5,566 nucleotides of DNA, taken from assembly GCA_018985225.1 (NCBI GenBank), contig JADGIF010000645.1:1-5566 (forward strand), in the 5' to 3' direction. This document shows positions 1 to 5,566 of the stretch, piece by piece (positions within the stretch are counted from its first letter, which is position 1; each line of letters starts with the position of its first letter). Both the position numbers and the translations under genes were made by a program. The notes beneath the pieces are model-generated. The model had not been told where the DNA came from. It ran no database searches and worked only from the letters and a program-made list of their open reading frames with translations. Origin of the DNA: Amoeboradix gromovi X-113 (Eukaryota > Fungi > Sanchytriomycota).

Positions 1-123
1 TCTTCTACTTTTATTATGAAGAGGGGATTGAAAGTAATGAAAGAAAATTGGTATAATAGAAGATCTTTTATTAATGACAGTATTTCCTCCTTAGGGAGCA
101 CCTTTAAATACGACTTAGTCTAG
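1..123 (+). pseudogene. 5'-truncated reading frame inside the left repeat (SSTFIMKRGLKVMKENWYNRRSFINDSI...), frameshifted relative to the right copy
   Basis: Frame 1 is open from base 1 to TAG at 121..123. Five codon differences from the right copy before the indel are synonymous (AAG/AAA, AGG/AGA, AAT/AAC, GAC/GAT, AGT/AGC). The product is not identifiable. Confidence 0.4.
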
Positions 124-146
124 TTTTTATATTTGGTGTCCCATAT
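9..146. repeat. Left copy of a diverged inverted repeat (partner 5429..5565); probably the end of a dispersed repeat or transposon family, truncated by the window edge
   Basis: Manual alignment of 9..146 to the reverse complement of 5429..5565 gives 118/138 identical (19 substitutions, one 1-nt indel near 84). It includes a 29-nt exact block TGGTATAATAGAAGATCTTTTATTAATGA (49..77). Similarity stops abruptly after GGTGTCCCATAT. Confidence 0.92.
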
Positions 147-1087: not shown

Positions 1088-1093
1088 TTTATT
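1088..1093 (-). terminator. Putative polyadenylation signal AATAAA of 14-3-3
   Basis: AATAAA begins 4 nt after the spliced stop codon (TAA-TTGC-AATAAA). Confidence 0.5.
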
Positions 1094-1097
1094 GCAA

Positions 1098-1956
1098 TTA
1101 TTCATCCTTGTGCTCTTCTTTATCCTTTTCTCCTAAGTCAGCTTTATATACCTTCTTGCAAATCACTGGTCCATAATGTCAAGTTATCTCTTAGCAATTG
1201 CATAATTAGAGTAGAATCCTTGTAGCTCTCCTCGTTGAGTGTGTCCAATTCAGCGATAGCATCATCAAACGCTTGTTTAGCCAAATGACAAGCACGATCA
1301 GGGCTATTCATGATCTCATAATAAAACACTGAGAAGTTTAAAGCTAATCCCAATCGAATAGGATGGGTAGGTGCCAATTCAGTCTGTGCAATCTCTGTGG
1401 CCACTTTATATGATTCGTGTGCTTCTTTGCTTGCCTTTTCGCGCTTATCTCCACCTGCAAATTCAGCTAAATAACGATGGTAATCACCCTTCATCTTATA
1501 ATAGAATACTTTTGACTCACCACTTTCAGAGTGTGGAATCAAATGTTGATCCAAAACAATCAAGATGTCAAGACAGACCTGAGTCAATTCTTCCTCAATT
1601 TTAACGCGATACTGCTTGATCTTGTCTACTTGAGACGCATTGCCTTTAGATTCCTCTTTTTGTTCAATGCTACTTACAATTCGCCATGAAGCCCGTCTAG
1701 CTCCGATTACATTCTTATAAGCAACGCTCAATAAGTTTCTCTCTTCTACGGTCAATTCGGCACCCAACTGTGCAACACTTTTCATGTGGGATACCATCTC
1801 GTCGTATCTTTCAGCTTGTTCGCTCAACTTAGCCATGTAACTACGTTAGCAATAAAGTTAGTCAAGGAGGTCAAGCTGTCAAATTAAATTATCAAATTGT
1901 AGGCTTTTCTGGACCAATTTGACTGCTACATACACATTATGTTCTCGATCAGTCAT
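1098..1956 (-). CDS. BMH1: 14-3-3 protein (BMH1/Rad24/epsilon-like), 248 aa; exons complement(join(1098..1132,1152..1840,1934..1956))
   Basis: Hallmark 14-3-3 motifs are present: AEQAERY-like [66 protein letters not shown] and [22 protein letters not shown]. Splicing restores a typical N-terminus ([13 protein letters not shown]) and an acidic tail ([16 protein letters not shown]). Exon lengths are 23+689+35=747 nt. Confidence 0.96.
1133..1151 (-). other. 19-nt spliceosomal intron (phase 1) in 14-3-3: GTATATAAAGCTGACTTAG
   Basis: It has a GTA donor after GAAG, a CTGAC branch motif and a TAG acceptor. Removal joins a charged/acidic 14-3-3 tail, followed by TAA and AATAAA. Retention gives an in-frame TAA. 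Confidence 0.85.
1841..1933 (-). other. 93-nt spliceosomal intron (phase 2) in 14-3-3: GTATGT...GCTAACGTAG
   Basis: It has a perfect fungal donor GTATGT and a GCTAAC branch point next to the TAG acceptor. Removal gives [13 protein letters not shown], matching the conserved RE..VY.AKL N-terminus of 14-3-3 proteins. Confidence 0.9.
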
Positions 1957-2068
1957 TTTACTATGTTTCAAGGGAATTACATTGAGATTTTTTCAGATTC
2001 CCACATGATTTGTTGCTATTGGAATGGTAAAAAGACAGCTAAAAGAATTCAAGTTTTGAAGATATGTG

Positions 2069-2074
2069 TTTATT
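2069..2074 (-). terminator. Putative polyadenylation signal AATAAA of Rab5
   Basis: AATAAA begins 4 nt after the spliced stop codon (TAA-AAAT-AATAAA). Confidence 0.5.
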
Positions 2075-2078
2075 ATTT

Positions 2079-2643
2079 TTAGCAGTTGCATTCTTCTCTT
2101 CTTTGATCAGCCATGTTAACTGGAGGTTGTTGAACGCGAACATCCCTAGGTAAAAACTCGACTATATTAGCTTAAAGTACCCATGTCTTTAAATATTTCC
2201 TTGACGCCAGTGCCATTCTTAGCACTGCATTCTTTATAATGAATTTTCAGGTCCTTGGCAAGTTCCTCACCACTACATTCTCGAGGTAAGTCAGATTTAT
2301 TGCCTACTAAACAAATAATACACTCTGTATGTTGGTTAACTTCTTGTATCCATTCTTTGGCCTTCTCTAATGTTATTGCGTTGTTAGTATCAAACACGAC
2401 AAGAGCAAGATGAGCATTTCTGTAATACATGGGAGCCAGTGATTTGTATCTCTCTTGACCAGCGGTGTCCCATATCTCGTATTTTAACACTGTACCATCA
2501 TTTGTAGTTACTTGTTGCGTTAAAAATGCAGCTCCAATCGTGGTTTCTTGATACTCATGAAACTGGTCTTTTACAAATCTTAGTACTATAGAACTCTTTC
2601 CAACGGAAGAATCCCCTAACAAAACAACCTTTCTAGAAAGCAT
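2079..2643 (-). CDS. RAB5: Rab5-family small GTPase (Ypt51/Vps21/Ypt5-like), 181 aa; exons complement(join(2079..2161,2181..2643))
   Basis: G-boxes are GDSSVGKS, WDTAGQE, NKSD and ECSAK. The effector loop QETTIGAAFLTQ and YKSLAPMYYRNA are Rab5-specific. The spliced C-terminus VEFLPRDVRVQQPPVNMADQRREECNC* ends in a CxC geranylgeranylation motif. An in-frame TAA directly precedes the ATG. Confidence 0.95.
2162..2180 (-). other. 19-nt spliceosomal intron (phase 1) in Rab5: GTACTTTAAGCTAATATAG
   Basis: It has a GTA donor, a CTAAT branch motif and a TAG acceptor. Removal restores the hypervariable tail and the terminal CNC that a membrane-anchored Rab needs. The unspliced ORF stops inside the intron. 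Confidence 0.92.
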
Positions 2644-3466
2644 TTATTACTCGAGTGTTTCAAATTATTCTCCACATTAGACTGAAATCATACACAAAGA
2701 TTTAGCCCTGTCCTTCCTAAATATGGCATTCATTAAGACGCATAATGATTATCTTATTTGGCTTTTTAACCTAGCTGAGTGCCTACATTTCAATTGAATT
2801 ATTGCTCCAAGGCAATTTAAAGACCTCTTTTATGGGGTTCGCTACATGAAAAACAGACTGGTGGCGAGAGAGGATGAATGCAAGAGGAGATCGCGATTTA
2901 CAAGGTAACCCAAACCCGTAAATGACTCCCTAAAGCGGTATTATGCAAGTCCTATCAGATGTTTTTACTAACGCTAGTGCTAGATTATCAATAATATCAG
3001 AAAACTCAACAGTGCCTATTTTTATCTAAGAGATCTTGTTTTGGTAATATAGTGGCTGTAATTACGACAACCATGTTATTAATAAGTGAGAAATATTTGC
3101 CATGGCGATGGTAGTTGCGAGAGAGAAAGAAGTATCACGGTAAACTAAACAAGGAATTAGTTATACACGAAAGAAAACATTGCTTCTGCTGTCTTCCGAA
3201 TGATAAACCTGACTTATAAACGAAGAGTAATAAGAAACAAAGAGTTTTTGCCTGGAATTTAGACGATATAACGTGAAACTTGTGCTTAGCAGCTAATACT
3301 TGAGACATTTGTTTTAGATATTTGCTCTAGTTTTTGTAGTGTGTCTCATATGCTCAAGAAATATAGAAAGAGGATATACTTGATTCCAATTACCCATTGC
3401 CATGCACCAGAGCCTCATGTAATCCAATTTATTAATTACACGAAATCGAGTAAGCCATCTATTAAG

Positions 3467-5269
3467 ATGTCTAGTGCGCTTACAACAGTCATCGCTTTCT
3501 TTATCTCGTTTATGGTTGTATCTAATGCGTGGAATTTAAGGTCTTCCTATAAACTCAATATACACAATCATGAATTTAAAATTGAAAAGGTTGACAATTA
3601 TTATTTAACGTCTGTGCCTTTTAGACACTCGAAATGCTTCTACCCTTTTGAGAGGTTTTTAACAGATTTTGACAAACATTTATTTATCCAATGCCTTATT
3701 AAAACGGAGTTATTAGATGAAATTGATGCTAAGACAATAGAAGAGGCCAGTTCTTTCTACTCTTCGCACTATGGTCCTCTCCCATCTGAATTTGAATCCT
3801 GGTTTCGTTTCGCAAAGGCTAACCAGTGTAGAATAAACAGATATGACCAATTGAATGCTCAACTACGGCAATTCAAACGAAGTCCAAAAGATTACAAACA
3901 AATTTTAACACTTTTACCTGCTTTTTTTAACAATACCCAGCTCACCAAAATGTCGGTTAAAGATGGGAAGGTAAATATAACAATTAATAGCGATAGAGCA
4001 GCTGCATATGTTCCTATATTCGAAAAAATTCAAGCACTTCTTCCTAATATGAACTTTTTAGTAAATACACATGCTCAGCCTATTATTATGCATAGGAATC
4101 GTTACACAGACGGCTTTTTGGAAGAAAACTCATTGAGCAAGTTTAATCAAAATCCCAGCGGAGTGAACATGATTGATTTGACTGTTCAAAATCCTGACAG
4201 GTCTAACTTCACTTCCACATTGCGTTTAAGAGATTTAATGAGTGAAAGCTGCCGTGCTGACCAATACAGAAATTCCCTAGAACAGGGTTACGGCTTGTTC
4301 ATTAATGCACCAGAGGAGTATCAAACTTTAAATCTATTTCCATTATTGAGCTGGGGCGGTTACCCGGGATGCACCAATGATATTTTAATACCATCTGTGT
4401 ATCACTATGAGTACCGAAAGCTAACTGAAGTTAAATCCGACTATCCATCATGGAAGTATAAAAGCAACACATTGTTATGGCGCGGTGCTACATCTGGCAA
4501 CCCATTCTACAACAATGTCCACATCACATACAAACCTGATCACATCTGTACCGGATATGACGTTTGCACTACAAATCAAACTAGAATTACTAAGCCAGAA
4601 TTATATGCTGACAGAATTTGGTTTTATTCACACAGGCAGCGAGCAGTTACTACTAGCGATCTTTTCCAAGGCATATTAGATATTCAGTTTGTAAACGGGG
4701 CTGAAATGGCGGTAGAGCTTCAAGAAGAAACGTTTAAGTTTTATTCAAAACCATGGCGGTTGTCGTTTTCTCGGTTCTTCAACAGTAAGTTCATTCTAGA
4801 TATTGATGGGAATGGATATTCAGGTAGATTTCTGAAATTGTTACGTGGAAACTCCTTGATATTTGCAGCTCATTATGCAACTGACTGGTTCAGCGACATC
4901 ATTATCCCATTTTATCATTATGTACCGGTAAACATGGGATACGATAAAATAGATTATACAGCAATACCACGAGAAATGAGGGAGGAATTGGTGAGGAAAA
5001 AGTTGCCTAACAAGTTTGACTTTGAGCATAGAGATCCAACTGATAAACATAACACGCCGTTAGGGTACAATGACCTAGCACCAAAAGCTTTGTACTATCA
5101 GAAAAACCTGGACTTTTCTGAAGAAATGGCATTAAGAGGGCAAAAATTTGCAAACCAGTATTTGAGAGAAGAGGATATGGATTGCTTCATATATCGAGCA
5201 CTTATAGAACTGCATGATATACTGAACAAAGAAAATAAAGATGCAAAGCAGCAAAAGGTTAATAAATAG
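3467..5269 (+). CDS. Glycosyltransferase family 90 (CAP10/Cxt1-like, putative xylosyltransferase), about 600 aa, N-terminal signal peptide/anchor, intronless
   Basis: Motifs recognised as fungal GT90/CAP10-type: HYGPLPSEFESWFRFAK...C...YDQ, LPNMNFLVN, DILIPS, WKYK..LLWRGATSG, SHRQR, KFILDIDGNGYSGRFLKLL, PFYHYVPV and GQKFA..YLREEDMDCFIYR. The start is placed at ATG 3467 (AAGATGT), just before the hydrophobic ALTTVIAFFISFMVV. The track's start at 3341 is a GTG, which is unlikely in a eukaryote. Confidence 0.85.
   Translation: MSSALTTVIAFFISFMVVSNAWNLRSSYKLNIHNHEFKIEKVDNYYLTSVPFRHSKCFYPFERFLTDFDKHLFIQCLIKTELLDEIDAKTIEEASSFYSSHYGPLPSEFESWFRFAKANQCRINRYDQLNAQLRQFKRSPKDYKQILTLLPAFFNNTQLTKMSVKDGKVNITINSDRAAAYVPIFEKIQALLPNMNFLVNTHAQPIIMHRNRYTDGFLEENSLSKFNQNPSGVNMIDLTVQNPDRSNFTSTLRLRDLMSESCRADQYRNSLEQGYGLFINAPEEYQTLNLFPLLSWGGYPGCTNDILIPSVYHYEYRKLTEVKSDYPSWKYKSNTLLWRGATSGNPFYNNVHITYKPDHICTGYDVCTTNQTRITKPELYADRIWFYSHRQRAVTTSDLFQGILDIQFVNGAEMAVELQEETFKFYSKPWRLSFSRFFNSKFILDIDGNGYSGRFLKLLRGNSLIFAAHYATDWFSDIIIPFYHYVPVNMGYDKIDYTAIPREMREELVRKKLPNKFDFEHRDPTDKHNTPLGYNDLAPKALYYQKNLDFSEEMALRGQKFANQYLREEDMDCFIYRALIELHDILNKENKDAKQQKVNK
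5261..5266 (+). terminator. Putative polyadenylation signal AATAAA overlapping the last two codons of the GT90 gene
   Basis: The gene ends AAT AAA TAG. Confidence 0.35.
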
Positions 5270-5346: not shown

Positions 5347-5428
5347 CCTGATAACACAAATTTTCTCAACCCAATGGTTCTTCTAAATAGCAATTTTACT
5401 TGAATAAATAACATTTCCCATTTCTCAT

Positions 5429-5565
5429 ATATGGGACACCAAATATGAAAACTAGACTAACTCGTTTTTAAAGGTGCACCATACGAAGGAATGCTATCAT
5501 TAATAAAAGATCTTCTATTATACCAGTTTTCTTTCATTGATTGTATTCCTCTTTTTAAAATAAAA
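5429..5565. repeat. Right copy of the diverged inverted repeat (partner 9..146), truncated by the window edge
   Basis: Its reverse complement aligns to 9..146 at about 85% identity. The inner boundary reads ATATGGGACACC on the + strand. Confidence 0.92.
5457..5564 (-). CDS. 5'-truncated reading frame inside the right repeat (FILKRGIQSMKENWYNRRSFINDSIPSYGAPLKTS*), unknown product, possibly a mobile-element ORF C-terminus
   Basis: The frame is open from the window end to TAG at 5459..5457. It shares the 16-aa block MKENWYNRRSFINDSI with the left copy, with only synonymous differences. Confidence 0.4.
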   Translation of the reverse strand, partial: FILKRGIQSMKENWYNRRSFINDSIPSYGAPLKTS

Positions 5566-5566
5566 C

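Follow-up and report, generated by a model that had tools for sequence, protein, structure and literature searches.

The stretch of DNA analysed here (the window) comprises 5,566 nt of the nuclear genome of Amoeboradix gromovi, an alga-parasitising fungus of the Sanchytriomycota, sister group to the Blastocladiomycota, in agreement with the fungal nuclear origin suggested in the initial annotation. It carries neighbouring genes for a Rab5/Ypt5 GTPase and a 14-3-3 protein, followed on the opposite strand by a glycosyltransferase family 90 gene (Table 1), which likely starts, with a signal anchor, at an ATG near 3467 and is absent at the matching place in two other sanchytrid contigs (L001, L022). 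At both ends of the window (1-146 and 5427-5566) stands a dispersed repeat of ~145 bp, in inverted orientation and with 83-89% complementarity between the two ends; at least 18 copies of it, at 78-94% identity, occur in 200 kb, and it is probably a mobile-element end.

Table 1. Features of the window (position 1 is its first letter) and the sanchytrid metagenome contigs used for comparison
Feature	Position or contigs	Strand	Support or remark
AATAAA, putative poly(A) signal of 14-3-3	1088..1093	minus	invariant in three species
14-3-3 exon 3, acidic tail and stop	1098..1132	minus	third-position changes; Allomyces continuity
14-3-3 19-nt intron, putative branch A 1138	1133..1151	minus	20 and 22 nt in orthologues
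14-3-3 exon 2	1152..1840	minus	Pfam 14-3-3, E 1e-108
14-3-3 5' intron, 93 nt, GTATGT donor, CTAAC-N-TAG end	1841..1933	minus	119 and 140 nt in orthologues
Invariant stem-capable arms in 93-nt 14-3-3 intron	1919-1924 and 1860-1865	minus	folding
14-3-3 exon 1, 23 nt, MTDREHNV	1934..1956	minus	like Allomyces and Gonapodya 14-3-3 N-terminus; conserved in L001, L022
AATAAA, putative poly(A) signal of Rab5	2069..2074	minus	sequence match
Rab5 exon 2, with CxC prenylation motif and stop at end	2079..2161	minus	homologue tails
Rab5 19-nt intron	2162..2180	minus	putative branch A 2167, intron position 14, -6 from end
Rab5/Ypt5 GTPase exon 1, ATG to phase-1 junction	2181..2643	minus	Pfam Ras; fungal RAB5 matches
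Glycosyltransferase family 90 gene, intronless	3341-5269	plus	Pfam PF05686, weak
Sanchytrid metagenome contigs	L001, L022/L023, L114-L117, L120-L122		ENA ERZ27314334, ERZ28573637, ERZ27314792, ERZ27310456

Both the Rab5 and the 14-3-3 reading frames are interrupted by a 19-nt segment, and a frame that retains the segment meets a stop codon inside it in both genes. The initial annotation had located the two segments correctly; they are bounded by GT..AG, identical at 13 of 19 positions, in phase 1, and the only matches to GTA-N7-CTRAY-N-YAG in the window. As it had also claimed, excision restores the Rab5 CxC tail and the 14-3-3 acidic tail, with AATAAA starting 4 nt past each stop. In Rab5, whose first exon has fungal RAB5 proteins as its best named matches (55-61%, homologue search), the frame with the segment left in gives 158 aa and closes with DMGTLS, whereas removal gives 181 aa and a C-terminal ECNC; CxC forms the C-terminal end in 114 of 119 homologues. 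The unspliced 14-3-3 frame ends in ...DLQEGI and is extended into the acidic tail once the segment is removed, while the Allomyces protein, intronless here, reads QEGDK continuously over the same junction. With 181 aa, the A. gromovi Rab5 is smaller than that of most fungi (~208 aa): its C-terminal region is short and the customary N-terminal extension is missing.

The 14-3-3 gene contains, in addition, a third intron of 93 nt that the initial count of two introns had missed and whose removal gives back the N-terminus MTDREHNVY. Its length across the three species compared is 93, 119 and 140 nt, with invariant ends, an invariant first 15 bases and a yeast-type GTATGT donor, and it is the sole long intron met in a scan of 203 kb; no intron at this position was found in the 14-3-3 genes of Allomyces, Blastocladiella or Gonapodya. 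An invariant AGUCAA/UUGACU pair could close a stem, leaving 9 nt free on the 5' side and 18-19 nt on the 3' side, with a pair probability of 0.2 in A. gromovi, where an alternative fold competes, and 0.9-1.0 in the orthologue on L022. This stem is put forward as a suggestion only, because the invariant arms provide no covariation support and because UUGACUAA could alternatively be a second branch site, a branch-like GACTAA lying 19 nt upstream of the intron end. The intron is reminiscent of the long introns with a stem described from Microsporidia (PMC6349667) and matched nothing in an Rfam search; it could be regulatory or RNA-bearing. Judged from this intron, the sanchytrid spliceosome would have a range beyond tiny substrates.

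Comparison with other sanchytrids adds evolutionary evidence. Public metagenomes contain long contigs from at least two or three uncultured sanchytrids, with conserved gene order, and on these Rab5 adjoins 14-3-3 as in the window. Across three species the Rab5 tiny intron measures 19, 19 and 20 nt and that of 14-3-3 measures 19, 20 and 22 nt, every indel in the two genes being confined to an intron, and the length changes between conserved exons are not multiples of three. Substitutions between species in Rab5 exon 2 fall chiefly at third codon positions, as do all 13 pairwise differences in 14-3-3 exon 3, which points to purifying selection on the exons flanking the tiny introns. Further orthologous pairs occur in eIF4A (19/22 nt), CDP-DAG synthase (21/19 nt) and CFAP20 (19/20 nt), and 8 of 10 compared positions are common to sanchytrids. 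In an orthologue on L116, two tiny introns of A. gromovi, of 22 and 19 nt, are missing, with alignment gaps of exactly that size, and this intron-less orthologue is a natural stand-in for a cDNA. A scan of JGI metagenomes contained no sanchytrid (best full-length match 56%), no spliced sanchytrid protein was among the homologue matches listed for the window proteins, and no run among the RNA runs searched for the window sequence contains it.

These comparisons bear directly on whether the segments could be assembly or amplification errors, pseudogene lesions or chance motifs. The genome (10.5 Mb, 36.27% GC) was indeed sequenced after whole-genome amplification (PMC8371127). However, a separate Logan contig, possibly derived from the same reads, is identical to the window over 900-2800, introns stand at the same places in independent metagenomes from three samples and the second exons diverge synonymously, so that an artefact is refuted by the orthologues and can be given almost no credence. 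On every genomic criterion applied, it is very probable at the least that both window segments are real introns; the splicing of the tiny introns as a class is what we infer from these patterns.

The prediction of a genome-wide peak near 19 nt was borne out by the motif scan and length plot: GTA-N7-CTRAY-N-YAG has 261 matches in the 10.55-Mb genome, whereas reversing the pattern leaves 70 and moving the spacing by a single base leaves 30. This excess is independent of the curated set described below. Among the first 100 matches to a variable-length pattern, lengths of 19, 20, 21, 22 and 23 nt occurred 28, 13, 3, 4 and 3 times, respectively, and lengths of 18 and 17 nt once and twice, giving a sharp floor at 19 nt with a tail to 22-23. 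The initial expectation of exactly 19 nt therefore holds for the mode and fails for the class, which spans 19-23 nt. In 203 kb (~2% of the genome), and without a frame filter, 29 of 32 strong-motif sites of 19-23 nt join coding sequence whose retained frame closes. Joining open reading frames by GT..AG alone proved too noisy (14 matches at 19 nt against 1-7 in controls) and was abandoned. A 24-nt length peak was likewise excluded from the count, as it consists of a single repeated sequence: near-identical copies fitting the intron pattern lie on at least 13 contigs (C6, C7, C154, C186, C206, C225, C240, C262, C368, C374, C380, C383 and C397) and form a repeat family.

Curation yielded 33 tiny introns (25 of 19 nt, four of 20, three of 21 and one of 22), which with the single 93-nt intron make up the complement of the 203 kb, so that introns of at most 22 nt are nearly exclusive. 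The donor is GTA in 31 of them, with G at +5 in one, and is followed by an A/T-rich middle of 7-10 bases and YTAAY-N-TAG; only these elements hold across the class, the consensus originally drawn from two sequences having been over-fitted. The branch A is assigned from the consensus alone, and its invariance at -6 in the curated set is not independent evidence, since the candidate pattern requires it. A pyrimidine tract is absent, and the usual layout is one tiny intron per gene, near its 3' end. Extrapolation from the motif excess gives ~600-700 tiny introns per genome, with an upper bound of 1,600 scaled from hand-picked contigs; the density is ~0.1 tiny intron per gene.

The joined exons agree with conserved protein families. 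In exon-by-exon searches, the profile positions flanking the intron adjoin in a kinase (125|126, HRDLK^PEN) and in CDP-DAG synthase (240|241), and are 247|249 in a septin and 91|93 in CFAP20; the exons of NDUFS1 map to chain residues 594|595 of structure 7zm7_A, while eIF4A is interrupted within HRIGRSGR and Rpt6 within ATNRIDILD.

As regards intron type, GT..AG ends with restored frames, a branch motif that can pair with U2 GUAGUA (by sequence only) and genes for U1, U2, U5, U6 and core proteins all indicate the major spliceosome. Neither an RTATCCTT donor nor an TCCTTAAC branch of U12 type is present, positions +4 to +8 being variable and A/T-rich. Removal by an Ire1/HAC1-type or tRNA-ligase route, or ribosomal frameshifting or hopping over 19 nt, would circumvent the spliceosome altogether, and Ire1-type fungal introns, at ~19-26 nt, are of similar length. 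Yet every segment has GT..AG ends and a U2-type branch motif, the snRNA set is full, and the junctions read AAG|GTA and TAG|GAG rather than CNG|CNG. Frameshifting or hopping, moreover, would demand different shifts for 19, 20, 21 and 22 nt and would have to cope with the in-frame stop found inside 20 of 31 tiny introns, including all three of 21 nt; these routes are accordingly regarded as highly improbable. We hold with high confidence that the segments are U2-type spliceosomal introns belonging to a genome-wide miniature class in sanchytrid fungi, for which shrinkage and a fitting of the spliceosome are proposed.

The origin of these introns was approached by mapping proteins onto their own genes, with one outgroup gene behind each homology. 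Gonapodya 14-3-3 has seven introns, the last of which (77 nt) lies at TSDLQD^A in phase 1, and the tiny intron of A. gromovi at TSDLQE^G equals it in residue and phase. Benniella Rab5 has eight, and its last (125 nt, FTSI^AKKLP, phase 1) is likewise matched in residue and phase by the tiny intron at FKDM^VEFLP. In both genes only the final intron of the outgroup is retained in the sanchytrid, and because of these shared positions the window introns are most likely shrunken old introns and not new ones.

Recent gain, by introner-like insertion or duplication creating new 3' sites, would require the two shared positions to be parallel gains. It would account for the two introns missing in the L116 orthologue, for the lack of the two window introns in Allomyces, Blastocladiella and Dimargaris, which retain 5' introns without the last one, and for the AG|G proto-splice site at the 14-3-3 junction. 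Against it stand the double identity of residue and phase with outgroup introns, the sharing of most compared positions among sanchytrids, and the sequences themselves: the 33 curated introns are alike only at their ends, lack near-identical copies and terminal repeats, and have dissimilar middles that also diverge between orthologues. Gain is thus considered unlikely as a general account and may explain part of the class. The independent origin originally proposed is supported: the sister group Blastocladiomycota has 14-3-3 introns of 60-353 nt, and lengths of 56-353 nt across sister-group and outgroup fungi speak against common descent with known tiny-intron systems, so that the likeness to other such genomes is taken to be convergence.

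Another feature of the class is its position. Of the 29 tiny introns placed within the 203 kb, 28 are located in the 3' half of their gene (p=1e-7, no exon-size filter), at a median of 207 nt and at most 732 nt ahead of the stop codon, and 11 of 14 do so in other sanchytrids. This location may come from help by last-exon definition or from a lower cost of retention there; that it is needed, through recognition coupled to 3'-end processing of the last exon, is a conjecture we rate below even. The bias can also be read as a sign that the introns, although real, are mostly retained, that short, C-terminally cut products dominate and that 3' introns survive through least harm or regulation. Precedents exist in Encephalitozoon, where introns of 22-76 nt are poorly spliced, often in <20% of transcripts (PMC3629993), which suggests that retention could be frequent in A. 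gromovi as well, and in Mikrocytos, where 16-nt introns are 63% spliced (PMC10245619). Retention, however, would deprive Rab5 of its prenylation motif, eIF4A of motif VI, the kinase of its activation segment and Rpt6 of its AAA lid, all essential parts, and purifying selection acts on the downstream exons; a measure of efficient splicing must therefore exist, and predominant retention appears improbable.

On the level of the splicing machinery, a genome search recovered U1, U2, U5 and U6 snRNA genes as single copies. U1 has an intact ACUUAC end and an Sm site, with a score below the Rfam cut-off; U6 keeps ACAGAGA and AGC, and U2, with its GUAGUA box intact, carries a single additional U separating that box from helix Ia, as in a second sanchytrid. 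The U6 internal stem-loop (L025 1501-1608) deviates from the consensus by a compensatory A-U under the loop and an A.G mismatch beside the bulged U. Among the proteins, U1-70K (L119; G000 C501 10805-11020) has ~175 aa and ends directly after the RRM, its RS tail being absent. Cwc25 starts MGRNLN and has M in place of Trp24, although ~120 of 131 homologues have G-D before LN and the Trp24 column is occupied by W or Y in 126; the MGRN/M combination otherwise occurs in one homologue, a close relative (69% identical). Isy1 is alignable only from human residue 12, with a different and longer N-terminus. SF3B1, SNRNP40 and CWC22 are given in the supplement of the genome paper (PMC8371127). One HMM search each in this 92%-complete genome returned no true match for Slu7 or Prp18, an apparent Prp18 match being rejected as the C-terminal end of a long protein reading like Sec31. 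The modified or reduced spliceosome originally envisaged is thus partly modified (U2 insertion, Cwc25 and Isy1 N-termini), while reduction has become doubtful, given the presence of U1, U2, U5, U6, U1-70K, Cwc25 and Isy1 and the 93-nt intron that must be removed as well. The changes are correlations with tiny introns and may be drift, sanchytrids being fast-evolving.

In the mechanism we propose, deletion bias would shrink surviving introns to the smallest loop accepted by the active site, 13-14 nt from G1 to the branch A, with 19 nt as the floor against which this bias pushes; a deletion bias against a length floor has been proposed for mikrocytids (PMC10245619). As 12 nt separate G1 from the branch A, U1 and U2 could hardly bind together and would act in turn. 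Full U6 and U2 helices would leave a linker of ~2 nt; pairing of U6 ACAGA with +4..+6 would be dropped and a short U2 helix on YTAAY kept, the loop comprising seven or more A/U bases. Fixed A-to-AG spacing would substitute for AG scanning and make Slu7 and Prp18 unnecessary, Slu7 being dispensable at branch-to-acceptor distances <=9 nt (PMC10158995), while room for the tight lariat would come from the extra base in U2 and from the changed N-termini of Cwc25 and Isy1. Most speculatively, recognition of tiny introns would depend on a coupling with the 3'-end processing of the last exon, hence their position. The most elaborate version, a remodelled spliceosome serving two classes (tiny and 3'-only; rare, long and 5', with a full donor and a closing stem), with survival through that last-exon coupling, a reversal of the 5' bias, and changes in U2, Cwc25, Isy1, Slu7 and Prp18 that are adaptive to a 14-nt lariat and convergent with Stentor, is offered as a rather unlikely whole.

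Several known systems invite comparison. Stentor coeruleus, a heterotrich, has 8,806 introns of 15-16 nt with the branch A at the 10th of 15 or 11th of 16 positions (PMC9505925); like A. gromovi it shows a GTA-only donor, an A/T-rich body and a branch A six from the 3' end, and its snRNAs are present, Slu7 and Prp18 were not found, and neither the glycine plug of Cwc25 nor the N-terminus of Isy1 is conserved (PMC9505925). Unlike Stentor, where no strong branch motif exists, A. gromovi has a clear YTAAY, lengths of 19-23 nt, hundreds of introns, a strong 3' bias and a coexisting long intron in an unrelated lineage. The nucleomorph introns of Bigelowiella natans (18-21 nt) are near-equal in range and mode and share the GT(A) donor (PMC10245619, PMC2483917), but number >800 in ~300 genes and lack a branch signature, in contrast to the sparse introns with fixed branch motif in the ordinary nucleus of A. 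gromovi. Mikrocytos mackini (16-17 nt) is similarly a reduced parasite with narrow lengths and a few hundred introns (PMC10245619); in mikrocytids, however, the intron sequences are conserved, the spliceosomal proteins number 17-19 and neither U1 nor U5 was found (PMC10245619), whereas the introns of A. gromovi vary in their middles and its U1, U5 and U1-70K are retained.

Closer in ancestry, Encephalitozoon cuniculi (22-76 nt) is a holomycotan parasite with short introns and CTAAY near the AG (PMC3629993, PMC6349667), and Microsporidia likewise place a rare, long, conserved stem-forming intron next to short ones (PMC6349667). A. gromovi differs in its mode of 19, far more introns, a weak donor (theirs is GTAAGT), a 3' rather than 5' bias and a separate origin. 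Yarrowia, Trichomonas and Giardia also fix the distance of branch to acceptor and lack a pyrimidine tract (PMC2483917), yet their introns are longer and have strong donors (PMC2483917). Short-intron lineages have been described without branch signals and intron-poor lineages with strong donors (PMC2483917); A. gromovi combines a weak donor, a clear branch and tiny size. Myxozoan introns have a median of 22 nt.

Altogether, the class represents an independent fungal origin of near-minimal introns, with a mode of 19 nt that lies under the reported 22-nt minimum of Encephalitozoon, is shorter than any fungal intron class we found reported and provides a new test of minimum spliced-intron size. 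New aspects are this fungal origin, the pairing of a weak donor with a fixed branch in a genome poor in introns, branching factors that have changed in parallel, and a 3' bias with surviving last introns, the last rather than the first being kept, counter to the usual pattern of intron loss. That the Cwc25 plug, the Isy1 N-terminus and Slu7/Prp18 are also changed in Stentor turns a one-species conjecture into a test of convergence. Furthermore, since the lineage keeps U1 and has close relatives with normal introns, the changes that enable 19-nt splicing are traceable and can be tested in yeast.

Tiny introns are unreported for sanchytrids in the searchable literature, subscription journals lying outside this scope; the genome paper mentions introns solely in the title of a reference, and proteins were predicted by TransDecoder on genomic contigs (PMC8371127). 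Public proteins consequently end at introns (Rab5 at 158 aa, eIF4A at YIHR, CFAP20 at 102 aa), also in Sanchytrium tribonematis, with which the EukProt entries of the unspliced window proteins cluster at 90%. With public sanchytrid proteomes cut in this way, counts of gene content, gene loss and 'unannotated proteins' need redoing. Called genes on the uncultured-sanchytrid contigs are likewise split at tiny introns, and one of these contigs carries a GAF and guanylate-cyclase gene two genes from 14-3-3 (L022 12786-15851).
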